From Dimorphilus gyrociliatus (taxonomy: Eukaryota; Animalia; Annelida), in assembly GCA_904063045.1 (NCBI GenBank), contig CAJFCJ010000078.1, forward strand, positions 1-53,167: a stretch of 53,167 bases of DNA. The letters run 5' to 3'. This document shows positions 3,001 to 47,802 of this stretch, in pieces; the stretch's first letter is position 1, and the number at the start of each line of letters is the position of its first letter. The position numbers were made by a program, and so were the translations under genes. The notes under the pieces were generated by a model. It ran no database searches. It saw only the letters and a list, made by a program, of their open reading frames with translations, and was not told the origin of the DNA.

Positions 3001-5011
3001 TGAAGAATCAAATTTAAAAGAATTATATATTCACAATTGTAAATGGAATTTGAAGTATATTATAACATTTTGTGAAATAATTGGAAAAATTAGCAAACTA
3101 CAAGTATTGAACTCACCATTTTTCTCAAATATAAACAATATAAATACTTTAAATGTAAAGGAAATTTTCAATTCAAATAATTTTAATTTACATTTTATTG
3201 AAATGATAATGAAAGATTTTAAAGATATTTTGAAAATGAAATATTTACATTTGGATGGAAATTTAAATTTGAATTCTGATGTGTTTTTACACATTCTTAA
3301 ACAAACTGGAAAAAATTGTTTGGAGACAATAATACTTCAAAAAAAGTTGAGAAATGATGAATTGAATATATTAAATACAATAATTCGAAATCAAAAATCT
3401 TTAATTAGTATAAAGCTTTGTCAACAAATGCCAAACATTTCATTTACAGAAACTTTTAAAGCGATTGAAATAATGAAAGCTTCCAAGTTACAATGTTTGG
3501 ATTTTACTAATTGTAATCTAAATAGTGAAACTGCTAATCTAATTCCTAAAATAATTGAGAAACATAGACAAATTACTTCATTATATCTTCATTACAACAA
3601 AATAGAATCAACTATTGGTAAAAAAATATTTGATACTATAAAGACTTTTTGTGAAAATTTGAAAATAATCGCTTTTGATGATTGTGAAATTGATTCAAAA
3701 GTTGGTAATATAATTGGTGAAGCAATTGGGCAGCAAAAGGAACTTGAACAACTTCTTTTGAATGGAAACAAAATAGGATCAAATGTTAGTCAACAAATTT
3801 TTAAAATGATTAAACAAAATTGTTTTAAATTGTCTGCTATTAATTTTGACAATTGTGAAATTACATGTAATGTTGGAAATATTGGTGATGCATTTGAGAA
3901 TTTGACCAGTCTAACAACTCTGACAATGCAGAATAATAATTTAGGATCAAAAGTTGGTGGAAATATATTCAAAAATATTCAAAAAAAATGTGTTAATTTA
4001 ATACACCTATGTTTTGATAATTGCAAATTTGACCAAGAAATGGGAGATGTTCTTGGTAATACTATTGCTAAACAAAAAAATTTAAATGCACTAGCCCTGT
4101 CAAATAACCAATTAGGATCAAAAGTTGGTAGAAATATATTTAAAAATATTCAAAATAAATGTTTCAATTTAATACACCTATGTTTTGATAATTGCAAATT
4201 TGACCAAGAAATTGGAGATGTTGTTGGTTTTGCTATTGCTAATCAAAAAAAATTAAATACACTAGTCCTGTCAAATAACCAATTAGGATCAAAAGTTGGT
4301 AAACATATTTTTGAAAATATAAAAAATAATTGTTTCAATTTATGCACACTGGCTTTTGATAATTGTAACTTGACTGAGTATGTTGGAAATGAAGTTGGAG
4401 ATGCTATAGGAAAACAGAAAAACATATCATTGTTAACTATGCAGATGAACAATTTAGGTTCAAGTGTTGGTAAATGTATTTTTGAAAACATTAGCCAGAA
4501 TTGCAGAAATTTAACAAGAATATCATTTGGTAATTGTGGATTTAATTCTAACATCACTAATATTATTGGTGAAGCAATTGGTAAACAAAAAAGTCTACAA
4601 TATCTTTATTTACAAAACAACAATTTAGGAACAGAATGCTGCAGAAATATATTTCAAAATATTTATCAAAATTGTTCAAATTTAAAACATATAAATTTGG
4701 GTAATTGTGGATTTGATTTTGAAATTGGTAATATTATTGGAGATGCAATTGGTAAACAAAAAGGAGTAGAATCATTAGTTTTCGATAATAATAATTTAGG
4801 AACAGAAATTGGTAGATATATTTTTGAACAAATTTTAAACAATAACTGCACTTCTTTAATTAATATTACGATGTGTAATTGTGAAATAAGTGATGTAATT
4901 AGGCCAATTGTTGCTGAGGTAATGGAAAGACAAAAATACCTTAAATTTTGTGCACTACAGAAAGTTCCTGTGGAACAATGCAAAGAATTTTTTAACTATG
5001 TAGAGTTCTAA
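5..5011 (+). CDS. NLR-type protein: N-terminal ~100-aa possible death-fold domain, NACHT NTPase, long LRR region (probable 66-nt intron at 2052-2117)
   Basis: Walker A GDAGMGKT, Walker B ILLLLDGADE, sensor-like VWSRH, winged-helix motif FIHFSFQEYLTA, and more than 20 LRRs (e.g. LSNNQLGSKVG, LQNNNLG). ATG at 5, stop at 5009-5011. The N-terminal domain identity is uncertain. Confidence 0.92.
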   Translation: MENKLLNYHYTTIKDCLENVSLFETHLKSKRIVTTDSLEECGNFESIFKKHICHMKTGDLIEILLNMDLEKCYKLVNLIKNTWNNLLEKRKECIMEEFGTIKKFPFQKYNDTSINFKNILTPVQIVPSSKNSQNNCTNYNSDIDDDIYQCVIEEGCQRILVRGDAGMGKTFHSMKLLYNWATSDNSLRDYLLLKVNLADIEDDDDLEKTLFLNNFTENTGVNLQLFQYFFTDYEKDCKERKKILLLLDGADELKYENSKFYSIITKINQIKYPVIVWSRHWKMRYVIETYDRIFEIIGFSPYNVKLYFRKFFNEENTPSLTYENMSNQLFKYLNEEKKDILEICRYPLVANLIAGLWEETKHEKLSDEYSIFKEVIKITLSNRGIEKGSNNYIEAMKYCSKVAFENLVYDKKINSNEIFEKTNYFGGILTPVKVRATLNSSTNKNEYKFIHFSFQEYLTANYIIKEFPNEVLNTETLKLILDKSKNLYLLTKVFLFIQQRNREVFIILVKINIKILSIVSDTNEQIIQLLKDRKQSSELSEIKLYSLNMEISMWKLITSFFNNSITEIDFFHVQIDFLKFIAISKSTLKGTLKTLKVCGGVKNSISVEILEKLLYEMVNLVELNISNIQFEYNEKMGSVTLSSENLKKLTLKNCNIEVLGENSIDLHCSNLCFLNLSGNNLQGKKLMIQHNKVQLILIVFILFTESSLKSLFENIENIMEDIQYLNLSRMEDNSIAFEYVFQQFFNFSFNNLKSLKMNDFRSTINLNSLIQFLNNHRQIENLELKGNNIEENLENSFFNCLLSMKNLEILKLPQIHFLQDKNMEIDDGYTGETFLNLKSLDTGENSLENPKMWKYFKRMLSNSRKLVEVNLNNSKFISKQFHIILDLINSIPSLNYREFKFYCKNCNLKVEDIEKVAKISIFTHIDLSYSTFLQHSNFPKNITFGNILKELCLEGCCLENEFLSNFSDLLQNLSHLTKLNISYNNFDSNSTKKFLCKLCEESNLKELYIHNCKWNLKYIITFCEIIGKISKLQVLNSPFFSNINNINTLNVKEIFNSNNFNLHFIEMIMKDFKDILKMKYLHLDGNLNLNSDVFLHILKQTGKNCLETIILQKKLRNDELNILNTIIRNQKSLISIKLCQQMPNISFTETFKAIEIMKASKLQCLDFTNCNLNSETANLIPKIIEKHRQITSLYLHYNKIESTIGKKIFDTIKTFCENLKIIAFDDCEIDSKVGNIIGEAIGQQKELEQLLLNGNKIGSNVSQQIFKMIKQNCFKLSAINFDNCEITCNVGNIGDAFENLTSLTTLTMQNNNLGSKVGGNIFKNIQKKCVNLIHLCFDNCKFDQEMGDVLGNTIAKQKNLNALALSNNQLGSKVGRNIFKNIQNKCFNLIHLCFDNCKFDQEIGDVVGFAIANQKKLNTLVLSNNQLGSKVGKHIFENIKNNCFNLCTLAFDNCNLTEYVGNEVGDAIGKQKNISLLTMQMNNLGSSVGKCIFENISQNCRNLTRISFGNCGFNSNITNIIGEAIGKQKSLQYLYLQNNNLGTECCRNIFQNIYQNCSNLKHINLGNCGFDFEIGNIIGDAIGKQKGVESLVFDNNNLGTEIGRYIFEQILNNNCTSLINITMCNCEISDVIRPIVAEVMERQKYLKFCALQKVPVEQCKEFFNYVEF
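3934..4320 (+). repeat. Recent internal tandem duplication of a 171-bp (57-aa) two-LRR unit within the NLR
   Basis: TTAGGATCAAAAGTTGGT recurs at 3941, 4112 and 4283 (period 171). The unit ...LIHLCFDNCKFDQE.GDV.G..IA.QK.LN.L.LSNNQLGSKVG is nearly identical at DNA level. Confidence 0.9.
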
Positions 5012-9447: not shown

Positions 9448-9994
9448 TTACCAGTTTTTGCATGTTTTAAAGAAAGTAATAATAGAAATACAACCCTAAT
9501 TGTATAGATGATATTCATATCTGAGAGAGAAGAGGGGAGAAATGTTAAATACATTATATTCAAAAAGTTTTTATAATGTGGAAAGTGATTGATGTATATT
9601 TTAAGACAGTGAAAAGTTTTCACAAGATTAACATATATTACTAATCATGTCCAACTTGAAATATTAATCTACAGCATAAAGAGCTTTAAAGACTCTTCTT
9701 AAATCGACCTTTACAGCTTACAGCTAAATGTGAAAAATCTGTCCAAAAAACAATCCTAAATCTTTTGCTAATTTTACTTATTTGTAGGTTTTTTTTCACA
9801 CTTGTAAACAAGTCTCTTACTGAATAATTTCTTTTTCTATCAATTTTTTATTATAGTAAAATAAAAGTTTCTGTTTGCTGCATAAATTAGAATTCTACAT
9901 AAAAGACTTTCCTGTTACATACTGTAGCATAATTATTTCAATATGCAACAAAAGAGTACAAGAATAACCTCAGTATTTAGGAATAGTAATGAAT

Positions 9995-10201
9995 GGGGCC
10001 GACAGAAAACGTCCCCAAATGAGATTTTTGAAAGCAACATTTCGGATTGAAAAATGGTTAGGAGGGGTAAAGTAGCTTTTGATTTATAGTTAGGGGGGTT
10101 CCATCTAAGGGTTAGGAGCAATCAAAAAGGTTAAGGAGAGACAAGGGCTAGGTTAGGGTTAGGGTTAAATCATGAATTTGGGGGCGTTTTCTGTCGTATC
10201 C
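9995..10201 (+). mobile_element. Mutator-like MITE with telomere-like TTAGGG interior, copy 1
   Basis: TIRs GACAGAAAACGTCCCCAAAT / ATTTGGGGGCGTTTTCTGTC. Perfect 9-bp TSD GTAATGAAT at 9986-9994 and 10202-10210. Internal GGTTAGGGTTAGGG. Confidence 0.9.
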
Positions 10202-10613
10202 GTAATGAATTAATCAATTCAAATTTTGTTTGTAGTGGTAGGGAAGATTGTGCTAGAGAAATTGATAAAAAAGTCTGTAATATGCCTATCATTATCAAAG
10301 ACAAAATAATCAATGATATGAACTATTTGAATGGCTAATTAAATGAGTAATGTATTGACAAAATAGACCATTTTGAATATATTTCCAACTTGATTGATTA
10401 TCAATTGTCTTAATGGATTAGATGAATTCTTTTCCAATAATTCAAACCAGCCAATGAAATGCAGTTATAAACACTGCCAGAATAATGGGAAAATAATAAA
10501 TAATAAATTACAAAATTTCTATTATTATGGTTGTATTTTAAATATTCAAAATTGTAATTGGAAAGTAAAAAATAATTGGTTCCGTTTTAACCTAATTGAA
10601 AACGGAGAGGAAT

Positions 10614-11880: not shown

Positions 11881-11928
11881 TTATTAAAACATGAAATAGT
11901 TAGATTTTGTAGACTATAGGCTATAATA

Positions 11929-13350
11929 CAGTATAGACAAAAAGTCCCCAGCCACCCTGTAAAATTTTTAGTTTTCATATTAAGATATACTGAATAACTA
12001 CTTTGAATTGGTAATAATAATTATTAATATGTAGAAACTAATATCCTTTACAAAAAATTATCAAAAAATTGTTTTTCTTTTAAAAAATGCAGTTTTAGTA
12101 ATTATACCTCGAAAAAAGGGGTTAGTTAAAAATGAGTCACCATCTATTTAATCAAAAACTAGGGGGCTAAGCTGCATAAATCAAATAGGAAATTATCTTA
12201 TTATAATTATATCTTTGGTTATTCAAAAAAATGGTGGTCATTGATAAAGGAATTCGTCATTTGGTTGTTGAAAAACACCAAGAAGGGCTATCGTTGAATA
12301 AAATTGCCAAAATACTAAAAATTTCGAGGATCAGTGCCCAAAATATCTGGAAAAAGTTTCAATTGCATTGTACAATTGAAGATTTACCCAGAAGTGGCAG
12401 GCCAGTCAAATTAAGCGAGCAAGATGAGAGAATATTATGCCTTATATCTAGCAGAAATCCTTTCTGGGGAGCAAAAAAATTTTGTCAGCCTCTAAATTAG
12501 CCTCAATAATATCCCTATCTACTTGCAAGAATGTTTTAAGGAAACATAACTTGAGTGGCTATGTTGCAGCAAAAAAACCCCTATTAAAAAAAAGGCATTT
12601 AATAAATAGGAGAAAGTTTTGCAAAAGACTCCTCTCTTGGAGCACAGAGCAAATTAATTCAATTGTGTTTTCAGATGAGACAAGGATAAATTTATATCCA
12701 AAACACAGGCAGTTTGTCAGAAGGCATCCAGCAGATAGATTTCAAGCAAAATATGCCATAAAAACGTTTAAAGAGGCAAATGGTTCCCTAAATATATGGG
12801 GTTTTATAAAAAGTGATGGCAGCAGAGGTATACATTTATATAAAGGTAACTTAAATTCTGAAAAATATCAAGAAATTCTTGATAAATCTTTTCTAGAGAA
12901 TTATAATAGGGACCAAGTATTCATGCAGGATGGTGCTCCATGCCATACATCTAGGAGTACCTTAAGGTATTTGGATGAAAAGAACATTAGGCACTTGCAA
13001 GACTGGCCAGCCCAGAGTCCTGACCTAAATCCTATTGAAAATTTATGGTCATACCTAAAAGGAAGGGTTGGTAAACATATGTGCACAAATGTTGATGATC
13101 TATGGAGGGTAACACAGCAAGAATTTGACAATATGATGGTGACTCAGTTTTAACCAACCCCTTTTTTCGAGGTATAATTACTAAAACTGCATTTTTTAAA
13201 AGAAAAACAATTTTTTGATAATTTTTCATAAAGGATATTAGTTTATACATATTAATCATTATTATTATCTATTAAAAGTAGTTATTCTGTATATCTTAAT
13301 ATCGAAACTAAAAATTTTACAGGGTGGCTGGGGACTTTTTGCCTATACTG
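11929..13350 (+). mobile_element. Tc1-like DNA transposon with ~215-bp TIRs; transposase frameshifted and C-terminally truncated
   Basis: TA TSDs at 11927-11928 and 13351-13352. TIRs 11929-12143 and 13136-13350 (CAGTATAG(A/G)CAAAAAGTCCCCAGCCACCCTGTAAAA...). ORFs 12231-12500 (HTH, GRP) and 12482-13153 (FSDE, QDGAP, SPDLNPIENLW) are offset at an A7 run near 12472-12479. The ORF stops inside the right TIR. Confidence 0.93.
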
Positions 13351-13559
13351 TATGTATTGTATGCTTTTGCTGTTTTTAGACAAATATTCATCGAGTAAAA
13401 ACTAGCAGCTAGGTCCATACAAGATGTTTTCTAATACAACAAATGAAATGAAGCAATTAATGGGAAGATCAGAAGTGAAATGGCATTCTGCTTTCTAGTA
13501 GATGAAAGAGTAAGCTCTTCTATTACTTGATCTTCAGTTTGATCACATGAACTGAAATC

Positions 13560-18984: not shown

Positions 18985-19519
18985 CCAATTTCTGGATCTT
19001 GTATGGATTCAGCAGAGTACACCATCTATTTGCAAACTTGGACTAGAGTCAAAAATTCTGTCTAAAAAACATAAAGGTTGTCAACACTTTGAAGACTATT
19101 TTACTATATATTTATTGAGCTTAAAAATTATAATATTGCTATTATATTTCAAACATATAAGAATACAATTTTGGGAAAATGCCTTTTCTTCATTTCAGCC
19201 CTTACCTAACCTTCCATTAAAGGAGCAGGCTAATTTCGATCCATTTTATTCATATTTCCATTTAATCCATATAGGAAACCATCATTTATAAAGTTGTTCA
19301 AATAGGTATTATTTAGACTGCAATCTCTATTATTAGTTTCCACTACATCCGAAACTATGTTCTCTAATGGCTCAGAAATGTCAAAATTGACAAAAAGTCG
19401 TTTTCAGCAGGTGTAGGAGAGCCTTGAAAATTAGGCGTAAAAGCATTTTACGCAATAAATGTAGGTGGAGTTTTCATAATAGGGGAGAGCATATTTTATA
19501 AAGCAAGCAAATGCAGGCT

Positions 19520-21753
19520 TTACGCAGAAGGTGTAGATGTTTCAAATCCATCTAGCCTATCATTACATTCTGGAATAAACTGACTCCTGTGACTCCTGCA
19601 ATATTTAAATAGAAATAAAAAAAAAAGCATCCTATCATTTACACAAAAGAAATCAATATACCTTTCAATTGGTCTAAGACGAACTTGATACTTTACCTTC
19701 TCTACCTGATAGCAATCATCTACAACTGATCAAAAAATACATTAAAATTACTTTAATTAATGAAAAAACATTTTTTACATGATTCTTCATCATCACAGTT
19801 TAGGGCTTCTCTGAAAGATTTCAATTCTAATGACTGATTTTCAATAGGACTAAGCACAACGTTTCCTTCGGCAACTAGTTTTCTTCTAGTTTCATAGATT
19901 TCTATTTCATTTAGTGTCTCAAATAAATCCAAGTAATTCTGATCTAATTCCTCAAAACTCAAAAAGATCCGTAGTTGATAAATTTCATTTTGTTGTTTCA
20001 CAGCCAGTGTAAAATTTGCTTTTGGTGTTGCACTATGAGTTGCTTTCATTCCACGCTCAGCAAAACGGATAAGAAAGGTTCCATTGTCATAATCTGCAAG
20101 AATTTTTTCTGCGTATCCCTTACTTATAAAACCATAAACCAATCTAAATAAAAAACCATACTAGTTTTTAATGGTATGAATTAAAACTCAAGAATTATTC
20201 TTCTTTTACCTCCTCTTCCAAAATGTATTTACTTTTCCTGCTCTTAATGAATTGATACACGCCACAAACCAACGCCAAGGTGTAAAATTTGTTATAAAAT
20301 ACTTTTTCTATTTGTATGAAGAAATTCTGATAAGTGAAATGAAATGTTCAAAAAGTATTTATTCTTACTGTTAAAAGATCATTAAGAGTGATGGTACTGT
20401 CATCATTCTCCAACACTGGTAAAAAAATTGAAGATAAAAATGAAAATATTATTTGTGAAAATTTTCAATACTTACTGAATCTATGTCTTAAATAGTTGAT
20501 TTGTGTAGATGTTAGATGTCTTCCAGTATTTGCATGGTAATAATCTAACAATAAATTCTTAAATTCATTCCATGGTTTCTCAACAGCTTCTCCAAAAAAT
20601 CTAAGCCAGCTCATAGTTGCTTTAGCTTGAACAACCTGTGATGTCTGCGAAATGATTACAAATGCTCTTGTACTAATAAACAATTTCAATTTGTGATTAT
20701 TCCACACGAATTCGTTCAAGTAAACATGTAAATAATATCTGAAGGCTGCCACTACGTTATCCTTATCTGTTTTCGGTCTATCCTTAATTTCAACAGTCTT
20801 CTTTAAGCCTAGATCAAATTCGAAATTCATCATTTCATTACAATCTAAAACTCTTCTTGGAATTTTATTGTGAAGTTCAAAGGAAGATTGTTGCTTCTCT
20901 TCCATGATGTTTGTTTCAGTTATTCCTGTTGAATCTGGCACCTTCAGAGCCTCACTGCACAGGAAACGTACAATAAAGGGAGTCTTTGTGGCCTGTCGCT
21001 TTTCTGCCTTGACTGTTTCTGTTGTTGGTAGTAAGATGATCAGGAATTGGTTTATTAACTGTTCAAGATCATCATATAACATATCTGAAGCTGTTTTGAG
21101 GTGATCATGAAAAATCTTAGAAGTCTGTTTATCCATAAACAAGTTTGGATTATCAAGCAAGTTGGAATGCACTAAAAGTTCATTATTTTTAACCAATGTT
21201 TGTATGATCATGTCAAACTCCTGTATTGATTTAATAAATTCAGACATTCTGCAAAAAAGCATTTTGTAAAAGTTTACCAGTTTACAAAAGAAATATTGAC
21301 TTACACTTTATCCAGTGCATTTATACATTTAACTGAGATTTCACTGAAGTTTCTTTCCTCATTTTTAAATTTAATACATTCATGAAAAAAGAGTGATGTG
21401 GCATTATGAGTTGTGTTCACTATCCCGTTCACTTGTTCGATAAAACTCTATGGACAAAAGTTTATTGGTAAACATCGTAGATGTGTTTATGTTTTATTAT
21501 TACCTTGAAGAAAGTAACATTTTCATCTATTTGGTTAGACCAATCAAACATTTTCCATTGATAAACACACTCCTACAATAAAGGAAAATTACTCATCGGG
21601 GGAAAATCAATTTACTTTTCTATATATATTATAATATTACATTTATTTCTGATTGTATAAGCAGAAGCATTGCTCTTTCCTTTAATTCATCTTCATACTC
21701 CTTATTAATCAACGAGAAAACTGAATTCTTGTCAATTTGTTGTCCCTTGGCAT
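19520..21753 (-). CDS. STAT: STAT transcription factor, copy A (coiled-coil, DNA-binding, linker, SH2, pTyr segment; tail truncated by premature stop)
   Basis: DBD motifs KTPFIVRFL and STRAFVIISQTSQVVQAKATMSW (cf. SLPVVVIVHGSQ..NATATVLW); linker NFTPWRWF; SH2 GTFLIRFAE with the conserved Arg; Tyr in DDCYQVEK (codon 19709-19711). Eight phase-consistent GT-AG introns traced. TAA at 19520-19522. The 5' end is uncertain; an upstream exon near 21827-21860 is possible. Confidence 0.88.
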
Positions 21754-22234
21754 TTCTATGCAAAAAAATCATCATCACAATTTTAAATTCCAATATTTTA
21801 ATCTAATGTGAAAGTAGAAATTCTCACCCTTCAGCCATTTTTCAATATTGATGTGCTATTCCAACAATCTCTTTGATAAGCACAATTAATATGTCGTAAT
21901 AAATTTTTATCCAGAAATTACATCTGTGCTGAAAAGTAAATGTTTTAACTCTGCTTGTGTATTATTTCCAACAGCACCCTGGTGACAACTGGCAGAGTCA
22001 GAATTCCATTTCCGGATTGGTCAATAGATGGAAAAAATAGGTTGTATTAGAAGTTATTCCAAAATGAATAGAAACAAATATTACATAATTTTTCACTGAT
22101 TCAAACAATTGAAAACATGTTTTGTAAAACAATGATATAACTGAAATTTCTTACTTTCGTATTAAACCGGATACGGAAATAGCAGACGTAAGATTGATTA
22201 TAAACAGCCTAGGTAACATTTTCGAGAAACCGCT
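20298..22234. repeat. 1937-bp near-identical block duplicated at 46347-48283 (offset 26,049), inside an older ~3.3-kb duplication (about 19090-22449 vs 45100-48386)
   Basis: ORFs 20465-21262 and 46514-47311 encode identical proteins. About four differing sites seen by eye (21716, about 21828-21834, 21910, 22027). Flanks are homologous but clearly diverged. Confidence 0.95.
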
Positions 22235-22345
22235 CATATATAATTATATAACCGAAATTTCTTATTTTCCTATGAAACCGGATACGGAAATAGGAGACAT
22301 AAGCTTGATTATAAGAGGCCTAGATAAACATTTTCGAGAAATCGC
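22133..22345 (+). repeat. 111-bp tandem duplication upstream of STAT-A (single copy upstream of STAT-B)
   Basis: AAACCGGATACGGAAATA at 22164 and 22275; CATTTTCGAGAAA.CGCT ends both units. Only one unit is present at 48182-48283. Confidence 0.88.
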
Positions 22346-22752
22346 TATTGATTTGTCAACAACAAAAGTACATTTTAAAATCTGAGTTATTGAGACCATC
22401 ATTTAGTATCTCAGATTATTAACAATAAATATGTGAAATGATAGGCCTAATCTGTTTAAATGTAATCGTTTTTGTTATTTATATAATTTACTTAATAAAA
22501 ATGTCAAAAAATAGAAATCACTGTATTACAAAAAAACTTGAAAAAATTTTTTACCTTTGAAAATTTTACAATAGCAGGAAAGTTATTTCATTGGAAAGAT
22601 ACTTTTTTTTTATTTACCACTTGCTCCAGATAAAAGCATTGTGCACACTTGACATACAATATTAATTTGGGAACAATGGGATATTATGTATATATTATTA
22701 ATCAGTTTTAATATATGAGTTCTCTCATTGCAGATGTTACCCCTCTCCCATA

Positions 22753-24259
22753 CTACAAGAAGGACTTTAGCGTACGATATTGATACTTTCTGAAATAATA
22801 AGATTCTTTTGATAGAATAGGCCTTTGTTTGTACTTCGGGACAAAACAATTCTTTTCAGCTGACAACTTCAGAAGAACATTGTCATGACAACCTCCCAAA
22901 AAAACATTCTTCAAAGTATTGGATGACTTGAAGTTCATTACAAATATTCGCTATTTTATCGCCCATCCTTTCATTGCCAGACAGATTTATTGTTTCAATT
23001 CTGGAGTAATGCCTTAGAAAATTTCCAATCTTTAAACTTTGTTTTTCTTTTAAATTTGTTAAATTTAAATCAACAATCTTTAAAGTATTTGATGACGTTT
23101 TCAATCCTTCAATAATCTTCAGTATTCCATTTCCCATGTTTATATTCCAAGATAAATTTATTTTTTCCAATCTGGAACAATATTTTAGTAAATTTCCAAT
23201 CTTTCTACTTTGTTTTTCATTTAAATTACAATCCTCCAAAATAAGAATCTTCAAAGTGGATGATGACCGTTTAAGCCCTTTACAGATCTTTGATATTCCA
23301 TTTCCCATACCAATATTCTGAGATAGATTAACTGTCTCAATTTTAGAACATTGTTTAAGGGCATTTCCAATCATTTTACTTTGTTGTTTATTTAAATTCA
23401 TAGAATTTAAATTAATATTTTTCAAAGTATTTGATGACATTTTAAATCCTTCGAAAAGATTGAATATTCCATTGCCTATCCCTGTATTCTCAGATAGATT
23501 AATTGTTTCTATTGTGGAACAACCTTTCAATACATTTCCAATGTTTTTGTATAGTATTCAAATTACAAGCTTTAAAAGTTATATCTATTACATGTTGTTT
23601 TGATTTTGTTAGATTTATCAAACCTTCAACTTCCTTATAAGTAATATGTTTTCCAGACATATCAATAATTTTTTTTCTCTCATCTTCCAGTTGTTTTTCA
23701 AGCTTTGAAAATAATTCCATTTGATTATTATCAAGGTTTTTCACTTTAAATTTGTCAATAATATCAGTATTGTTGTTAAGTTCTTTCTTTCACATCTATC
23801 AATTTTGTTTAGGGTTTCAGTTTGTCTTTTGTCTTCTTCATCCAAAATTCCATTCAATTTCTTATTCATTTGCTCAAACTTTGTCATTGAGAAAGTTTTA
23901 CAAGTCTCATGTTTGTCATCCAAACATGAAACGCATAATCTTTGAATACCATGTGTTTGGTAATACATATCTGACTGTTTTTCATGATATTTGCATAAAT
24001 TTTTCCTGCTTTTTAGATCTTGTAAACGACTAATAAATCGATGTTTTGGGAGTTGTGCAATATCTCCATTTTTTATTTCAATATTTTGTCTACATTCTGG
24101 ACAGCAGATTTCACAATTTTTTACTTGAAATTTTTGAATACATTCAAAACAGTATGTATGTTGGCAAGGCAGTATTCTTGGATCATTGCCTATCAAACTT
24201 CTATAGCAAATAGAACATTCAATTTCATCTTCATAAATGATGATTTGCTTGGATAACAT
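22753..24259 (-). pseudogene. RING/B-box/coiled-coil/LRR (TRIM-LRR) paralog broken by three frameshifts
   Basis: RING (CSIC...PCQHTYCFEC...CPEC) and B-box-like (CKYH...CVSC...H..C) in 23741-24259. Frame changes near 23780 (with about 50 codons deleted relative to the 29941-31323 paralog), near 23548 and near 22930. LRRs in 22883-23530. Confidence 0.85.
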
Positions 24260-25123
24260 TCCAAATTTCTGGTTGATATTTCACTTTCCCATCCAATATT
24301 ATTAAACTATGAAGTTCTTAATGATAAAATAATATATGTAAGCAATCTTCTCTTAATATTGAAAATTGCTGTGTGCTATCAAGAAATATTTATATCCACT
24401 TTTTTTTGTTTTACAGCCAAAGATATAATATTTTATAGTAGTTGAGTGTTCTGTAGTTATAAAACTATATAAGGATAAATATTTATTATATCGTAAATAG
24501 TGTACTTGTCTTGTTTGATCAATTTATGAGTTTGCATGTCCAAAACATATGAACTATATGATTAAGCACTACAATTGAAGATTATAAAACAGTAATGTAA
24601 ACAACTTTGTGCTTTTAGATCTTGTTTATGGTATCACCTATAATTTGTGTATTGCGCTATTGTAACCACCGAAATTTCTTGCTCATTCCAATCCTTATCT
24701 TAAGGATTATAAGATGTAATGAAAAATATTCGTATATCTATGATTTTATCTTAAACTAGCCCTCAGTTTTCATTAACCATTTTCCATAACCTTAACAATC
24801 AGATTAATCATAACCATCCAGAGTTATACTATTAAACACTGTAATAACCATTTATTGAAAAGGATTTTTGTAGCTATAACTATCTTATAATCATAAAACT
24901 TCTGACAACTCTAATAATTACTTATCAATATATCAACCATGAAAGCATTAATCATAAAATTATCAGGCAATTGTCCACAACTATATATTGTTCTAAATGT
25001 ACAATTGGTTTATACCTTACCCATCACAAGAATTGACAACTTCAAAATTTTATGAAGTTAAGAGTGAAGTGCTAGAGAAAAATGTTTTCATTAATCTTTT
25101 ATAATACCGTATATTGAAAAAAC

Positions 25124-26007: not shown

Positions 26008-26269
26008 CTCTGTGTGACAAAAAAAGGACAACGAAATGCTATAACATTGGCCAAACACAGGTCTTCATTAGTCAGTTTGAAGGTTCATCTTTAATTACCT
26101 GTTAAGTGATGATTGGATATCAGAGGCAAACCTTAAAGTATATAAATCCTCACTATTTTCATTCTATTCATTTGTATCATTTGTTTAAAGGTTCGAGTAA
26201 AACCAGTACTGTTGTAAGTGGCAATCACATAAATTAGCCAAGCAAGAGCAGCACAATATGAAATGCCGT

Positions 26270-26420
26270 TTTCTCTCATCTTGCTCATTTAATTTGCATG
26301 GTCTGCCACATTTAGACAAATTCTCAATTATATTGTGTAAGTTGAACTTTTTCCAGATTCTTTGAGCACTGCATCTGGAAATTTCAAGTATTTCCACAAT
26401 TTGTTTTTTAACAATCAAAT
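26270..26420 (-). mobile_element. Tc1 transposase N-terminal fragment
   Basis: EILEISRCSAQRIWKKFNLHNIIENLSKCGRPCKLNEQDER closely resembles the 12231-12500 ORF. Confidence 0.8.
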
Positions 26421-26535
26421 AAAAAAACAAGAAAGTTTTTCTGCAATTTGAAAAGATATAGAGAGCACTATTGATTCAGTTGCAAAAGAAAATAGTCATT
26501 TATTTAGACAATAAAGATCTATTTACATTTCTCAT

Positions 26536-27692: not shown

Positions 27693-28658
27693 TGTAATTT
27701 TTTTTCAATTGATTTTGTGTCCCCAATGAAAATTTTAATCACACTGAAAATTCATACTTGCATTTAATTATTGCATATTATTAACATTTATATATGAAAT
27801 GTAGCCAATGACTACTGATTAAATAGAAAATAACTGTTACAATGATCAATTACTTCACTTGCAGATTAAATTCGCATATAGACACTAATTCTTAAAATTT
27901 TTAATCAGAAACGATTTTGTGGTCCTACCTTAACGCCAATCCAGCCCTGGACCATATTTTAAGCACTTCCTGGTACCAAACCCTTAATTTGGACTCAGCT
28001 AATTTACAAATTAATAAATTGCAAATACATTATTAATGAAATAAATGTTAACTTTAACATTTTGCTCAGAGTAAAATGACATCCATGACCTTTAAACATT
28101 TTACATTTTATGTTGCTTTTCAAAATATCAATGATATTTTCTATGTTAAATTTACTAGTTTGTAAAATATTGAATAATATTTCATTCATTTTAGAAATTT
28201 TTATTCAAGGAATTTTAAATGTTAAAATTTGAATTTATCATACTCTTTTTTTTTAATATATGCATTGGCCTTTTTTCTGATTTAAGTTTCTCTACAGCTG
28301 AAATAAGACTTGATTTCTGTTTTAAAATGTCTATAAGAATTTAAGAATTTATCCATCATCCCCATAGCAAGCTTTCCAGACTTTCTTTGGTTTGTAAGCT
28401 GTCTATGATAAGAACTACATTCCTTTTGTTGAATGCATTTGTTAACAGCTTCCCATTCCTGATTGGTCTATTATAATTTCTCATTCTGAATTGAAAATCA
28501 TCTATGATTTTAATCTTAGACATACACTCGAAGTGTGTAACTTCTTGTTCCTGTATATCGAAAATAGCCATTTGTCTTTGTTTAGCTTCCTTCACTGTCG
28601 GTTCTTCACTCAGAAAAGAAGAAAAGAAGCAGTGGAGCATTACCTACCAGAGGATCAA

Positions 28659-28867
28659 GGGGTCGACAGAAAACGTCCACAAATGAGAAATTTCAAGACA
28701 AAAATTTGGATTGAGAAATGGTTAGGCAAAAGAAAACAGCAACTGATTTGTAGTTAGGAGGGTCTCCTCTGAGGGTTAGGGGTAAAGGAAAAAGGGTTAG
28801 GTACAGCTAAGGGCTGGGTTAGGGTTAGGGTAAAAGCACTGATTTGTGGACGTTTTCTGTCGTATCC
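28659..28867 (+). mobile_element. Mutator-like TTAGGG MITE, copy 2
   Basis: TIRs GACAGAAAACGTCCACAAAT / ATTTGTGGACGTTTTCTGTC. Perfect 9-bp TSD GAGGATCAA at 28650-28658 and 28868-28876. GGGCTGGGTTAGGGTTAGGG at 28811-28830. Confidence 0.92.
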
Positions 28868-29940
28868 GAGGATCAATGGTCTGCACTTTATTAACATTAG
28901 ACTGCTTAAGTTTGGTAGTGACACATCATTAACTAAAGCAAACAATACTGTAAGAATGCTGCCACCAAAACAATTTTGTCAAGGACAATCTTATGATTTT
29001 TCTGATGAACCAGTATGTACCTTTGAAACTCAACAAATGTCCAAAATAATGACAAATATTTATGAAATAAAAGCTGAAAAACTGGCATTTCAAGCACTTA
29101 AGTGTATGGTAAACGCAGAGTCAACTTTCAAACTTATTACTTCTTTGGAGCAAAAAAGCACAGAATTGAAAAACAATTACCTTGACCAAAAAGCAATGTA
29201 GAACAATGCTTAATTCTAAGAAAACTCTAGATGGACAAAAACTTATTCAGAAAGGAAAACTTCGTGAATTTGGTGAAAACAAATTATGATTATTATTATT
29301 TGATTTTATTAACTAAATACAATGTTTTAAAGTATAATTGTTGAGCTAGTAGAAGAGTAGAATGCTTGTTTCGGTGGAGGTCATTTCAAGATCATCTTCT
29401 CAGATGCTTGGATTGAGTTATGATGATTGGAATGAAAATAGTGAGGATTTATATACTTTGAGGTTTGCTTCTGATATCCAATAATCACTCTACAGTTGCC
29501 AAAACTGTCTAATTTATATTTATCACTTGCAACAGGATGTTAAAAGGTTCAACATTTATGCAGGCTAATTGAATTATAATTTGGCAACGCCTTAGGCAAA
29601 CTAGATATATCGACAATATTTCCAAAGCTGAAACTTTCCGCTGCGAAATTAAAAGTCTTGTTTTTTGAAGATTGCCACTTGGACAAGTAACAATTGACCC
29701 ACAAGATTTAGTCCTAACTTGTAACCAGTTTGAAAAAGTCAGAAACAGGTTTGATGAAATGCATTTCATTAGCAATATATCTTATAGTTCAATATATGAG
29801 TGTGTGTGATTTGTAATAATGTTGTGAACTTGTGTAGACTGGTGTGTTGACTTTGCTAAAATATTTTCCTCTAATTTGTTTAACATTTATAGCTTTTCAA
29901 ATTTTTAATACACTTGTAAAAGATTATCAAAGTATTCACT

Positions 29941-31323
29941 TTATTCCTCATTTAAATCAAAAATGTCTAACTGAAGATTCTTCAAAGTATTTGATGACGC
30001 TTGAAATCCTTCCAATATATTCAATGATCCATTTTTAGTAGTTTCATTGTTTGTTTCAATTGTTGAACAATGTTTTAGCAAACTTCTAATCCATATACTT
30101 TGTTCCTCATTAAGATCACAATAATCCAAATAAAGATTTTTCAAGGTTTTGGATGACATTTGAAGTCCGTCACAAATATTGAACAATCCATTTCCCATAT
30201 TCTTATTCCCAGATAGATTTATTGTTTCTATTGATGAACAATTTTTTAGCATATTTCCAATCAGTCTACTTTGTTCCTCTTTTAAATCACACCAACTTAA
30301 ATTAAAATTCCTCAAAGTTTTTGATGACATTTGAAGTCCTTCACAAAAATTCATAATTCCATTGCCCATATTTTTATTTCCTGTAAGATTTATTGTTTCT
30401 ATTGATGAACAATGTCTTAGTAAATTGCCAATATTTTCAGTTTGTGCTCTGTTTAAATTATAAGCTTCAAAATTAATATTTATTCCTATATTCCTTGATT
30501 TTATTACATTTGCCAAATCTTCAACATCATTACATGTTATACCTTTTTCATACATTTTCATTTTCTCATATTCTAATTGGTTTTTTAACTTTAAAAATGT
30601 TTTTAATTGTCTTTTGTCAAAGTTTTCTATTTCAATATTATCAATAAAATCAAAATTATTTAAAAATTCATAATGAACTGCAAAGTTTGTATTAATTTCT
30701 ATTTTTTCTTTCTTTGATCTTTTTAAAATAACTTCAAGTTTTTCAGATTCACAAATGAATGTTTCAAAAAATTCAACCATTAGTTCATTTAGTGAAATAA
30801 ACTTTTGTCTCATAATATCATAATCTTTCTGAATTTTTTTTATTGCTTTTCTTTCATATTCATTTATTTTGTCCAAGATTTCTGTTGTACTTTTTTCATT
30901 TTTATTCAAAATTCTATTAAATGTTTCCTTCATTTGTTCAAATTTTTCCATTGAGAAAATTGTACAAGTCTCATGATTGCCATCTAAACATGAAGTACAT
31001 AATCCTTGGATACTATGTGTTTGGCAATAGATATCTGACTCCTTTCCATGATATTTGCATAGATTTTTCCTATTCAGTAGATCTTGAACAGAATTTACAA
31101 TTCGATTTTGTTGAAGTAGATTGATATTTCCAAATCTTATTTTGACAATTTGTCGGCATTTAGGACAAACAATTTTAAAATTTTTCAGTTTCAATTGTTT
31201 AATACATCCAAAACAGAATGTATGTTGACAAGGTAACATTCTTTGATCCTTTCCCACCATGGATTCTAAACAAATTGCACATTCAAGTTCATTTTCACTA
31301 ATGATATATTGTTTGGCTGCCAT
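29941..31323 (-). CDS. Intronless RING/B-box/coiled-coil/LRR protein (TRIM-like E3 ligase with LRR C-terminus), 460 aa
   Basis: ATG at 31323. RING CAIC...PCQHTFCFGC...CPKC; B-box-like CKYH..DIYCQTH...CTSC...H..C; charged heptad region; LRRs with a 57-aa period (SSIETINLTGNKNMGNG...LSWCDLKEEQS). Confidence 0.88.
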   Translation of the reverse strand: MAAKQYIISENELECAICLESMVGKDQRMLPCQHTFCFGCIKQLKLKNFKIVCPKCRQIVKIRFGNINLLQQNRIVNSVQDLLNRKNLCKYHGKESDIYCQTHSIQGLCTSCLDGNHETCTIFSMEKFEQMKETFNRILNKNEKSTTEILDKINEYERKAIKKIQKDYDIMRQKFISLNELMVEFFETFICESEKLEVILKRSKKEKIEINTNFAVHYEFLNNFDFIDNIEIENFDKRQLKTFLKLKNQLEYEKMKMYEKGITCNDVEDLANVIKSRNIGININFEAYNLNRAQTENIGNLLRHCSSIETINLTGNKNMGNGIMNFCEGLQMSSKTLRNFNLSWCDLKEEQSRLIGNMLKNCSSIETINLSGNKNMGNGLFNICDGLQMSSKTLKNLYLDYCDLNEEQSIWIRSLLKHCSTIETNNETTKNGSLNILEGFQASSNTLKNLQLDIFDLNEE

Positions 31324-31870
31324 TTTGAATCAATGACTAGTATTGTTGTTTTACTTTCGTTTTCTATATTTGCAGCTATTAAATCAACAATGGAAAAATT
31401 TAGACACATTTTGATAGGTCAACTTATAATTGACATTAAAAACTGTTTGTTCGCTCTAAAGCATATTTTTCGTCTAAATTTTTATGGGAAAAGAGTGATA
31501 TTAGTGTAATTATTTCTTGTTTTGACTTTGTCTCATCATTACTGCAACATTCAGTTCACATCTGGTTTGGCATTCAAGTAGATGGATTCACCATATTTGT
31601 TTATGTCTGTTTGAGTCTCTCAATCTCAATTTGTGCAATTTGAACATATCCCATCATAAGAAAAATTTTCTTTATGAATAATAACTTAACCTTAAACTCT
31701 ATCTTCAAAAATATTTTCTATTAGAATATAATATACTGTATACACAAATAAAGAATAATGTTGTTGAAATAAGTGATAACTCTACAGTTTCACATGGAAA
31801 ATGATAATCCAAATGTGCAGTGTGCACTTAGAAACATCAACATAATAATATTTAGACTTAGATATTATAG

Positions 31871-35849: not shown

Positions 35850-37082
35850 ACTTTAACAGGGACTTATGAAGGGCGATTAAATCCTTCTTCCGTCTTTTAT
35901 TCAAAATTTCCAATTTTTGTTGAATAGAGTGCCACAAATGGGACCTGTCGAAAACGGCCATAAATGAAATATTTGAAAGTTAGATTTCAGCCTGGGAAAT
36001 GGTTAGGAGGAATAAGATAACTGTTGATATGTTCTTAGCAGGGTCCCATCTAAGGGTTAGGGGTATTCAAAAAGGTTAGGCAAAAACAAGGGCTGGGTTA
36101 GGGTTAGGGTAAAACCATAGATTTATGGCCGTTTTCTACCACATCCGCCACAAATTATCCTTTTTAGTAAATTGGGGGCCGTCATATGCAAGATTCTTCA
36201 ACATGTGCCATGCATTCTCTATGGGGGAAAGATCTGGGGAGTAAGCTGGCCGAGGTAATACTTTGCACCTTTCAGTCTTAAAATATTTTAGGATAATTTT
36301 GGCTTTGTGGCAAGGAGCATTATCCTGTTGGAAGATGAAACTCTTCCCATATCTTTTTTTCAGGAATGGCATGACCTTTTTTTTCAAAAGAGGCAAGTAC
36401 CATTCCTTTGTGCACTTTTTTTCGATCCTGGAAATGTGCAAGAACCCATCTGGCCGCATACATCCCCAGATCATTACTCCTCCACCACCTATTGGATGCT
36501 TTGTTCTTAGATTTTCTATTTCTGGGTTGAACTGCCATGTTTGGAAATTGTTTGGCCCATCTAAGCTGAATCTACATTCATGAGATATAATTGTTTTGTC
36601 CAAGTCAAATTTATTTTCAAACCAGCCTCTACACATTTCTACTCATCTTAGTCTATTTTTCTTCTTTAGTGGGGGATTTAGAGGGATTTTTTTAAATTTC
36701 CCTCCCATTTCTTTTAGGGCTTTCTGTATGGTCGTCTTTGATACTATTAAGTTGCACTTGGATGCCAACTTTGTACTTGTAACCCATTGTTTTTTTCCTC
36801 CTTCATCTTTTTAATCTCCCTCTTCATGATGATTCTGTCTCTTTTTGAAAGGGAGCTTGGTCTCCCTACACCTCCACTTTTTTGGTATGATGGCTTCAGA
36901 ATGAATTTAACAGAAGATTTTGGAATTTTCAATAATTCTGAAATCTCTCCATAGGATAATCCCTCTTCATGTTTTCTCTTGATTAATGCCTTAATTACTT
37001 GACCATATGCCATATTCAAATTTTATTTTTGATACTGGCCTATTAATATTATTCATGTCTATCATACTGATTGAGTACACTG
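35850..37082 (-). mobile_element. Decayed Tc1/Tc3-like DD34E transposon, interrupted by a MITE
   Basis: HTH/GRP ORF at 36747-37019. Catalytic ORF 36136-36636 has SHECRFSLDGP (first Asp changed to His), QDNAP and SPDLSPIE with 34-residue spacing. Frameshift near 36800 and a TGA near 36643-36645. Putative end CACTG|TA at 37078-37084; the other TIR was not found. Confidence 0.8.
35940..36146 (+). mobile_element. Mutator-like TTAGGG MITE, second subfamily, nested in the Tc1 transposase
   Basis: TIR cores AAAACGGCCATAAAT / ATTTATGGCCGTTTT. Perfect 9-bp TSD GCCACAAAT at 35931-35939 and 36147-36155. GGGCTGGGTTAGGGTTAGGG at 36090-36109. Confidence 0.9.
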
Positions 37083-45280: not shown

Positions 45281-47802
45281 TTAAACAAAGTCATATTCAG
45301 TTTTATCCGGGTCATTCAAATAAGTATTGATTAGATTAGACAATAGTTGGGCATTTTCCTGTACTTCCAAATAACTTTGCTCTAGATAAACGTTCCCTAA
45401 TGATTCACCTTGCCCACATTGAAAAATAGGGAAATTGTCAGGTAAAGTATTCTCCGATTGCGTAGACTGAAATTCATCTTCAACTTCTGTAGAAGAGTCT
45501 TGGAAAAAAGGCGAAGGCGTATTTTGTGAATGCAGGCTTTCCACAGAAGGTGTAGGTGCCTCAAATCCATCTAGCGTACCATTACATTCTGGAATAAATG
45601 TATACCGATGCCTGAAATTTTTTAAAAGAAATAATAAACAGTTGTCCAATTTTTTAAATGGGTAAAAATTGATATACCTTTCAATTGGTCTAAGAAGAAC
45701 TTCATATTTTACCTTCTTTGCATTATAATTATCTTCTCCAGCTGATAAAAAAACACATTAAAATTCCTTTTATTAATAAAAAAACATTTCTTACCTAATT
45801 CCTCGTCACTATTGTCATCGTCGTCTCTAAAACTTTTCAATTCAAGTGGATTAGATTCAATTGGATTTAGCACAACTTTGCCATGGGCAACTAGTTTTCT
45901 TCCAGTTTTATAGATTTTGATTTCATTTAGGGTATCATATAAATCCAAGTTTTTATTATTCAATTCTGTAAAAGTCAAAAAATCCTGTAGATGATAAATT
46001 TTATTTTGTTGTTTCACAGCCAGTGTAAAATTTGCTTTTGGTGTTGCACTTTGAGAAGCTTCTATTCTACTCTCAGCAAAACGGATAAGAAAAGTTCCAT
46101 TATCGTGATTTGTAAGAATTTGTTCAGCGTATCCCTTACTTATAAAACCATAAACCAATCTGTATAGACAATCAAATTAGTTTTTTGTGAAATTAATACT
46201 CAAGAATTTTTCTTCTTCTTACCTCTCCTCCCAATATGTTTTTACTTTATCTGTGCCTGACGAATTGATGCATGCCGCAAACCAATGCCATGGTGTAAAA
46301 TTTTTTTTATAAAGTTTATCTTTGGCATCTTGTTTTGGTGTTTCTGAATACTTTTTCTATTTGTATGAAGAAATTCTGATAAGTGAAATGAAATGTTCAA
46401 AAAGTATTTATTCTTACTGTTAAAAGATCATTAAGAGTGATGGTACTGTCATCATTCTCCAACACTGGTAAAAAAATTGAAGATAAAAATGAAAATATTA
46501 TTTGTGAAAATTTTCAATACTTACTGAATCTATGTCTTAAATAGTTGATTTGTGTAGATGTTAGATGTCTTCCAGTATTTGCATGGTAATAATCTAACAA
46601 TAAATTCTTAAATTCATTCCATGGTTTCTCAACAGCTTCTCCAAAAAATCTAAGCCAGCTCATAGTTGCTTTAGCTTGAACAACCTGTGATGTCTGCGAA
46701 ATGATTACAAATGCTCTTGTACTAATAAACAATTTCAATTTGTGATTATTCCACACGAATTCGTTCAAGTAAACATGTAAATAATATCTGAAGGCTGCCA
46801 CTACGTTATCCTTATCTGTTTTCGGTCTATCCTTAATTTCAACAGTCTTCTTTAAGCCTAGATCAAATTCGAAATTCATCATTTCATTACAATCTAAAAC
46901 TCTTCTTGGAATTTTATTGTGAAGTTCAAAGGAAGATTGTTGCTTCTCTTCCATGATGTTTGTTTCAGTTATTCCTGTTGAATCTGGCACCTTCAGAGCC
47001 TCACTGCACAGGAAACGTACAATAAAGGGAGTCTTTGTGGCCTGTCGCTTTTCTGCCTTGACTGTTTCTGTTGTTGGTAGTAAGATGATCAGGAATTGGT
47101 TTATTAACTGTTCAAGATCATCATATAACATATCTGAAGCTGTTTTGAGGTGATCATGAAAAATCTTAGAAGTCTGTTTATCCATAAACAAGTTTGGATT
47201 ATCAAGCAAGTTGGAATGCACTAAAAGTTCATTATTTTTAACCAATGTTTGTATGATCATGTCAAACTCCTGTATTGATTTAATAAATTCAGACATTCTG
47301 CAAAAAAGCATTTTGTAAAAGTTTACCAGTTTACAAAAGAAATATTGACTTACACTTTATCCAGTGCATTTATACATTTAACTGAGATTTCACTGAAGTT
47401 TCTTTCCTCATTTTTAAATTTAATACATTCATGAAAAAAGAGTGATGTGGCATTATGAGTTGTGTTCACTATCCCGTTCACTTGTTCGATAAAACTCTAT
47501 GGACAAAAGTTTATTGGTAAACATCGTAGATGTGTTTATGTTTTATTATTACCTTGAAGAAAGTAACATTTTCATCTATTTGGTTAGACCAATCAAACAT
47601 TTTCCATTGATAAACACACTCCTACAATAAAGGAAAATTACTCATCGGGGGAAAATCAATTTACTTTTCTATATATATTATAATATTACATTTATTTCTG
47701 ATTGTATAAGCAGAAGCATTGCTCTTTCCTTTAATTCATCTTCATACTCCTTATTAATCAACGACAAAACTGAATTCTTGTCAATTTGTTGTCCCTTGGC
47801 AT
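45281..47802 (-). CDS. STAT: STAT transcription factor, copy B (full acidic/Pro-Ser-Thr tail)
   Basis: Same exon structure as copy A. Linker KKYSETPKQDAKDKLYKKNFTPWHWF; SH2 GTFLIRFAES; Tyr in GEDNYNAKK (codon 45725-45727); tail ...APTPSVESL..NTPSPFFQDSSTEVEDEF... ending at TAA 45281-45283. The 5' end is uncertain. Confidence 0.88.

Follow-up and report, generated by a model that had tools for sequence, protein, structure and literature searches.

Two divergent STAT paralogs of the annelid Dimorphilus gyrociliatus share a young near-identical block that points to partial gene conversion

Two STAT genes of the annelid Dimorphilus gyrociliatus, here called A and B, share a 1.94-kb block that is nearly identical between them and that lies as a young island inside an older, clearly diverged duplication. 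The genes are located in the first 53,167 nucleotides (nt) of contig CAJFCJ010000078.1 (assembly GCA_904063045.1; genome size 78 Mb). This stretch is referred to as the window, and its coordinates equal those of the record. Gene A corresponds to DgyrCDS14802/DgyrCDS14803 and gene B to DgyrCDS14808, both unnamed in the public record. The locus is a real, clean but ordinary case of gene conversion. An old duplication of ~3.3 kb, followed by later non-reciprocal copying with B as the probable donor, is the joint explanation that fits the sequences best, and we regard it as highly probable.

The near-identical block, its edges and its age

Genes A and B lie 26 kb apart on one contig, in the same orientation and on the minus strand, as do all features of the two genes given below. 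The window has a GC content of ~30% and contains no Ns, including the stretch between the copies. Self-comparison of the window showed one long direct repeat, 19510-22234 versus 45529-48283. Within it, direct comparison of A 20298-22234 with its counterpart B 46347-48283 (1937 nt each) gave an ungapped alignment with 7 mismatches, equal to 99.64% identity or 0.36% divergence. The block starts 396 nt before the ATG, takes in the whole of exons 1-6 and introns 1-6, and ends 10 nt into exon 7. The original prediction, made from the letters of the window, had placed the block at these positions; with both genes encoded on the minus strand, however, the near-identity falls in their 5′ two-thirds. 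It had also called the promoter identical, which holds in part, as the identity upstream of the ATG comprises only those 396 nt.

The seven mismatches (A coordinates 21716, 21829, 21830, 21832, 21834, 21910 and 22027) fall at four places, so that the earlier count of about four differing sites was fair. All of them are confined to the 5′-most 519 nt of the block, with two upstream of the ATG, four in exon 1 (codons 2-4) and one in exon 2, and none in exons 3-6, introns 1-6 or the start of exon 7. The four exon-1 differences are clustered within 6 nt (21829-21834), where A reads M-A-E-G and B reads M-V-K-R. Over the 5′ half as a whole, A and B differ at 5 of 1158 coding nt, and introns 1-6 (373 nt in total) are 100% identical, confirming that introns belong to the homogenized region. 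All differences lie 5′ of a perfect core of 1418 nt (A 20298-21715, B 46347-47764), the longest identical run. When the 188 mismatches over 2814 aligned columns were permuted 10,000 times, the longest run never exceeded 203 nt, and the best two-breakpoint chi-square for the identity island was 409. No GC-biased conversion signal was found in the block, with a GC fraction of 0.306 versus 0.311 and 0.319 in the 3′ halves.

The 3′ edge of the block is positioned directly after codons K-K-Y, 10 nt beyond the intron-6 acceptor. The abrupt switch predicted at this point was confirmed: immediately beyond it, exons 7-10 and introns 7-8 are no more than 74-89% identical. The diverged 3′ part of A (19520-20297) consists of what remains of exon 7, which belongs to the linker, the SH2 exon (exon 8), exon 9 with the tyrosine motif, and exon 10, which ends at an early stop (19520-19522); that of B (45281-46346) has a tail ~85 residues longer. 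Exons 7-10 occupy 20307-20210, 20143-19779, 19725-19662 and 19595-19520 in A, separated by GT-AG introns, and 46356-46223, 46159-45795, 45741-45678 and 45611-45281 in B. Identity between the genes is 74% in exon 7, 81% in intron 7, 81% in exon 8, 89% in intron 8, 80% in exon 9, 59% in intron 9 and 81% in exon 10, in agreement with the earlier description of the linker, SH2, tail and 3′ flank as diverged. Exactly at this edge, A lacks 36 nt that are present in B (46310-46346; placement uncertain by ~2 nt) and encode the 12 residues S-E-T-P-K-Q-D-A-K-D-K-L. The segment is carried by B and by both outgroup paralogs, P0002 and P0008, and is missing in A only, indicating that the 12 residues are ancestral and that A has a derived in-frame deletion. 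The 12 extra residues first noted in B are thus present, but as a loss from A and not a gain in B. A third paralog, P0001, was unusable as an outgroup for this indel, being without exons 7-8.

At the 5′ edge, A alone carries an old, diverged 111-nt unit (22235-22345) that duplicates in tandem, at 87% identity, the 104 nt with which the block begins (22131-22234 in A, 48180-48283 in B). This duplication was unreported by Tandem Repeats Finder and recovered by blastn and MAFFT; the unit has three occurrences in the whole window. The old 5′ flank of A follows (22346-22452), 81% identical to B 48284-48390, where the original ~3.3-kb duplication reaches its 5′ limit. A blastn comparison of 22242-22452 with 48180-48390 (83.5%, E 8e-57) showed that the 5′ flanks are true homologs. 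The proximal ~48 nt of this flank (22346-22395 versus 48284-48333) are 96% identical, above both the old unit (87%) and the remaining flank; they may represent a promoter element under conservation or what is left of an earlier tract.

Both edges therefore coincide with structural heterologies in A, and the proposal that the boundary marks a functional module border was not supported. Whether the two indels arose with the copying or were older and stopped it, the 3′ boundary within exon 7 points to a mechanical limit or scar and not to a selected domain border. A large segmental duplication around the genes was also considered and rejected, as the shared unit is the ~3.3-kb gene only and the other collinear-looking matches are short repeats or transposon open reading frames (ORFs).

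The age of the duplication was estimated from the 3′ halves, where A and B differ by a synonymous divergence (dS) of 0.284 and a nonsynonymous divergence (dN) of 0.211, giving an omega of 0.74 (195-199 codons). Omega is 0.35-0.39 for A or B versus P0008, and dS between A/B and the paralogs P0008 and P0002 is 0.46-0.71. With P0002 and P0008 as outgroups, 26 informative sites in the 3′ halves unite A with B, against 6 and 7 for other groupings, indicating that these halves are closest kin and that nothing was imported there from a third paralog. The order of events read from these distances is expansion of the family, duplication into A and B, and copying of the block much later. As neutral sites within the block are identical (introns 100%) against a 3′ dS of 0.28, the identity is not due to purifying selection. 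The proposal of recent gene conversion is supported by this contrast between a young island of 0.36% divergence and the older duplication that surrounds it.

Comparison with the outgroups showed that A is the more derived copy: its N-terminal K-R has become E-G, it is 12 residues short, it has lost a tail of ~85 residues, and it has ~2 times as many unique changes as B. The outgroup paralogs start with M-S-K-R-N and B with M-V-K-R-N, a resemblance indicating that the four clustered exon-1 differences are derived in A. Similarly, the long C-terminal tail is present in B and both outgroups and missing in A, so that the early stop of A is derived. The sequence past this stop (19240-19519 versus 45281-45538) is 54% identical to the tail coding sequence of B, with indels, indicating an old loss of the tail and not a recent nonsense mutation. 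In the 3′ half, 29 unique changes were assigned to A and 16 to B with P0008 as outgroup (chi-square 3.8), or 17 and 8 where both outgroups agree. Near the SH2 phosphate pocket, the sequence is R-F-A-E-R-G in A versus R-F-A-E-S-R in B and both outgroups.

Two short STATs in a Dimorphilus expansion

Each gene has 10 exons, and the introns are of the GT-AG type and 53-72 nt long, in keeping with the median intron of 66 nt in D. gyrociliatus (PMC7854359). The coding range of A (19520-21838) yields 586 residues, and the translation of the exon model is identical to P0011 (DgyrCDS14802), with P0010 (DgyrCDS14803) as a shorter isoform. The coding range of B (45281-47887) yields 683 residues in our model and 656 in the public one, P0009 (DgyrCDS14808). 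All three public proteins map to the window at 100% identity. Searches were made with individual exons or with these public proteins, and joined exons served for translation and for dN/dS only. The public model of B starts at a methionine within exon 3 and includes intron 9 (45612-45677) as in-frame coding sequence. In B, exons 1 and 2 are intact and near-identical to those in the A isoform DgyrCDS14802. The M-S-K-R-N starts of the outgroup paralogs also support the exon 1-2 models. Gene B thus probably encodes a 683-residue protein beginning M-V-K-R-N, DgyrCDS14808 is probably truncated at its 5′ end, and these unnamed proteins can be annotated as STATs.

The assignment to the STAT family, which had been made from the letters of the window, was borne out by domain and fold searches. 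Against a cut-off of 21 bits, the Pfam SH2 model scored 24.7 in the SH2 exon of A and 29 in that of B, and 20.2 and 24.9 in full-length A and B, respectively. A phmmer search of the PDB with the SH2 exon gave STAT6, STAT5B and STAT5A as best matches (E 0.003-0.04), and both proteins carry the STAT-type SH2 motif G-T-F-L-x-R-F with its conserved arginine, as G-T-F-L-I-R-F. Before the SH2, STAT_linker (PF21354) was found at 28.4 bits in P0011 (A), above the cut-off of 27, and just under it in P0009 (B; 24.8 bits) and P0008 (24.0 bits). The STAT DNA-binding domain (PF02864) and coiled coil (PF01017) gave no Pfam match in A or B. Exon 5, the large exon, is predicted to span the beta domain together with a portion of the coiled coil and the beginning of the linker; a PDB sequence search with it gave no true match, only a chance match to CBL-B (E 0.49). 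A word search with the exon-5 ORF, narrowed by a length filter, returned a single unnamed D. gyrociliatus paralog. When its ORF was searched against 1.84 billion protein representatives, five matches were returned, three of which were Dimorphilus paralogs or distant Logan ORFs. Another of the five, P0005 (E 5.8e-4), is a bona fide STAT in which STAT_bind, STAT_linker (63 bits) and SH2 are all recognized.

From a nine-sequence alignment, AlphaFold gave a model of poor quality (predicted local distance difference test score 43.5, template modelling score about 0.25) with long helices, a beta domain, a helical linker and the SH2 in this order. In a Foldseek search with this poor model, all 46 PDB matches with E <= 0.001 were STAT cores (best 3e-12). 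A tyrosine shortly after the SH2 in exon 9, a predicted phosphorylation site, stands in V-K-Y-Q-V in A and V-K-Y-E-V in B and is invariant in all four paralogs. The N-terminal oligomerization domain (PF02865) gave no Pfam match, and the proteins begin at the first long helix. This domain is not known from Dictyostelium STATs either, indicating that its absence defines a short form and not exclusion from the family. By these domain, motif and fold matches, A and B are very divergent short STATs without an N-terminal domain.

The genome holds three further paralogs, P0001, P0002 and P0008. P0001 (L001, 5658-7263, on CAJFCJ010000052.1) is annotated as a single exon of 290 residues; homologs of exons 3-6 and perhaps of the tail exon were identified there and nothing matching exons 7-8, making it a STAT-like gene without SH2. 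P0008 (DgyrCDS7166; L005, CAJFCJ010000009.1:178000-184627) adjoins a GWT1 gene, as does the distant homolog P0003 (L003 and L004, from Logan SRR23372229 and SRR31984834). Because this neighbour is common to both, P0008 is probably the ancestral locus. A, B, P0001, P0002 and P0008 are about equally far from P0003 (32-33%), which points to a lineage-specific expansion in Dimorphilus. No ortholog of the A/B pair was found in the public protein sets of the 1.84-billion search, where matches from outside Dimorphilus were at most 35% identical. P0009 and P0011 are recorded in one NCBI assembly only, and exact look-ups of the exon-5 ORF (265 and 260 residues) and of P0010 found nothing in other assemblies.

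Probable copying from B into A and the alternatives

An identity island with diverged homologous flanks on both sides requires a non-reciprocal double exchange, that is, gene conversion. The account we favour starts with two STAT paralogs from the old ~3.3-kb duplication (silent divergence ~0.28). Much later, a 1.94-kb stretch consisting of the proximal upstream region, the coiled coil, the DNA-binding domain, most of the linker and the introns would have been copied non-reciprocally between them by interlocus gene conversion in the broad sense. B is the most likely donor, because the structural scars at both block edges are in A only and B has retained the ancestral form at each. In A, a gap or a stalled fork may have been repaired on the B template and rejoined imprecisely at both ends, with synthesis-dependent strand annealing ended by end joining, or template switching, as candidate routes. 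At the 5′ edge, the old version of the first 104 nt in A would have survived beside the new copy as the 111-nt tandem duplication, and at the 3′ edge the repair would have left A without the 36 ancestral nt. The identical block would afterwards have been open to ordinary homologous re-homogenization, with the heterologies at its ends acting as hard stops. The perfect 1418-nt core beside 519 nt with all seven differences suggests at least one later round, and thus two or more rounds of conversion in all; the skew of the seven differences into 519 of 1937 nt has a p of about 1e-4, or 0.005 with the cluster counted as one event. In this later round, a second, more recent tract may have re-homogenized at least 20298-21715 and ended at the same 3′ limit.

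Several points weigh against this account. A single public assembly underlies both copies, and its short-read polishing by Pilon could have altered small differences. Alignment of both loci showed no convincing microhomology at the block junctions. B can be named as donor only if the copying itself produced both indels; indels that predate it would have served as tract stops, and the copying could then have run in either direction. Finally, the suggestion of two rounds rests on four mutational events only.

A possible but doubtful alternative is that selection has favoured continuous concerted evolution between two older indel barriers, with varying direction, keeping the upstream region, the coiled coil and the DNA-binding domain identical because a common output would be advantageous, while the SH2 and tail, spared by conversion, would have diversified into two inputs. 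This is the reading given in the original prediction. Both edges lie exactly at heterologies, as expected of barrier-limited tracts, and the uneven spread of the seven differences suggests repeated rounds. Sequences that are only 80% identical do not readily initiate homologous conversion, and homogenization without a break since the duplication would explain why it can still occur. The fast-evolving 3′ half (omega 0.74 versus 0.35-0.39 for A or B against P0008) and the same pattern in mammalian STAT5A/5B also agree with this alternative. However, both heterologies are derived in or specific to A, and one scar-forming event is simpler than two independent indels that happen to frame the block. 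In addition, the history of the converted part is erased, and the missing tail of A and its evolution ~2 times faster than that of B (29 versus 16) agree with relaxed constraint as well as with a second input.

It is very unlikely that the block is an assembly or polishing artefact, in which diverged copies, or a single copy, were made identical by correction, consensus, haplotype merging or polishing. The assembly was made with self-corrected PacBio RS II reads, Quiver, Pilon and HaploMerger2 (PMC7854359), and both copies are known from it alone. Mixing of reads between paralogs should nevertheless have hit the equally similar 3′ half, where ~80% identity is retained, and a divergence of 20% cannot be polished into identity. 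The edges are sharp to the base, each is marked by a structure confined to one copy (the 111-nt unit at one, the 36-nt deletion at the other), and seven copy-specific differences are preserved. The unrelated surroundings of A and B indicate that they are not two haplotypes of one locus, and the window contains no Ns. Furthermore, the library was a 20-kb PacBio library with a 5-kb size cut-off (PMC7854359), so that a 1.9-kb repeat can be crossed by a single read.

Less probable still is that the whole gene was duplicated recently and that its 3′ half then diverged very fast or was overwritten from a third STAT paralog. The omega of the 3′ half is high and three further paralogs are available in the genome, but the 3′ silent sites and introns are as diverged as the coding sites (dS 0.28; introns 59-89%), which is not explained by selection alone, and the 5′ flank is old too. 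In their 3′ halves, A and B are closer to each other than to P0002 or P0008 (26 informative sites versus 6 and 7), the dS of these halves to the two paralogs is 0.46-0.68, and the third paralog, P0001, has no SH2 exons to donate.

A single unequal crossover between A and B giving chimeric genes, which had also been proposed and which their direct orientation 26 kb apart would permit, is rejected, because it would have deleted or duplicated the intervening 26 kb and left identity from the crossover point to one end, whereas diverged homologous flanks are present on both sides (5′ 81-87%, 3′ ~80%), the sequence between and around the copies is unduplicated, and a reading of the 5′ flank as a shared transposable element is unsupported by any further copy in the window.

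Surroundings, possible function and known systems

Directly upstream of A, at 22886-24280 on the minus strand, lies a gene for a RING/B-box protein with leucine-rich repeats of 171-nt period. A paralog, 53-54% identical, follows 7 kb further at 29944-31329 (minus strand), and more 171-nt repeats are located at 3600-4850. An element of ~230 nt containing the telomere-like repeat GGGTTAGGGTTAGGG occurs in four copies that are 66-91% identical (9990-10224, 28654-28890, 35935-36169 and 52200-52434) and is probably a small non-autonomous transposable element. At 11926-13353, an inverted repeat with 219-nt arms (94% complementary, 990 nt apart) surrounds an ORF with relatives at 26188-26475 and 36139-37022, a layout resembling that of a DNA transposon bounded by terminal inverted repeats. 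Scans for Rfam families and tRNA genes gave no matches in the window.

As predicted from their sequences, A and B have the same coiled coil and DNA-binding domain and differ in their SH2 surfaces, in the residues next to the tyrosine motif and in their tails. A could equally provide a second input, act as a competitor that has no tail, or be in decay with its front part rescued. We consider it rather unlikely, although conceivable, that conversion recurring between the two heterologies keeps the DNA-binding output of the tail-less A tied to that of the full-length B. If so, A, with its own diverged SH2 and tyrosine motif, would act as a competitor or partner of B at precisely the same DNA sites, encoded by a gene of its own and activated separately, a gene-level counterpart of the STAT-beta isoforms and convergent with the mammalian STAT5A/5B arrangement. 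No gamma-activated-sequence-type sites (TTCNNNGAA) were found upstream of A and B, and the window as a whole showed no enrichment (22 found versus 26.8 expected).

The literature search returned no paper linking Dimorphilus with STAT or with gene conversion at this locus. The locus reveals no new mechanism or pathway; its value is that of a textbook-clean partial gene conversion, in which the duplication and deletion scars of A point to the donor and the likely repair route without population data. Gene conversion of a segment between adjacent STAT5 genes is mentioned in a passage of Liongue et al. 2012 (PMC3296744) that cites Seyfert et al. 2000 (J Mol Evol 50:550). As far as that passage describes them, mammalian STAT5A/STAT5B resemble A and B as adjacent STAT paralogs in which an extended intragenic stretch is homogeneous and other domains have diverged to differing degrees. 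The annelid case differs in that the duplication is independent, the genes are very divergent STATs without an N-terminal domain, and indel scars at the tract edges give polarity. STAT5A and STAT5B differ most at the C-terminal transactivation end.

A similar layout is known from other gene families. Slightom, Blechl and Smithies are said to have found in 1980 that the human fetal globin genes HBG1/HBG2 are near-identical in their 5′ part, including promoter and introns, and diverged in the 3′ part. They would share with A and B the arrangement as tandem duplicates and a sharp switch at a tract-limiting sequence feature, although the limit in the globin genes reportedly is a simple-sequence repeat in an intron, whereas here it is an exonic 36-nt deletion together with an upstream 111-nt duplication. 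Mammalian TLR1/TLR6 also undergo gene conversion and are likewise neighbouring signalling or immune-type paralogs with a base-sharp near-identical module in otherwise diverged genes, but belong to another gene family.

With regard to the proteins, STAT1-beta and STAT3-beta are C-terminally truncated isoforms that arise by splicing or proteolysis from one gene and bind DNA as the full-length form does. A, as predicted from its sequence, resembles them in sharing the coiled coil and DNA-binding domain of B without the C-terminal tail, and differs in that its short form comes from a gene of its own whose SH2 has diverged. The pattern seen in STAT5A/5B, a shared DNA-binding part with diverging input and tail, has arisen independently in a lineage-specific STAT expansion of an annelid.

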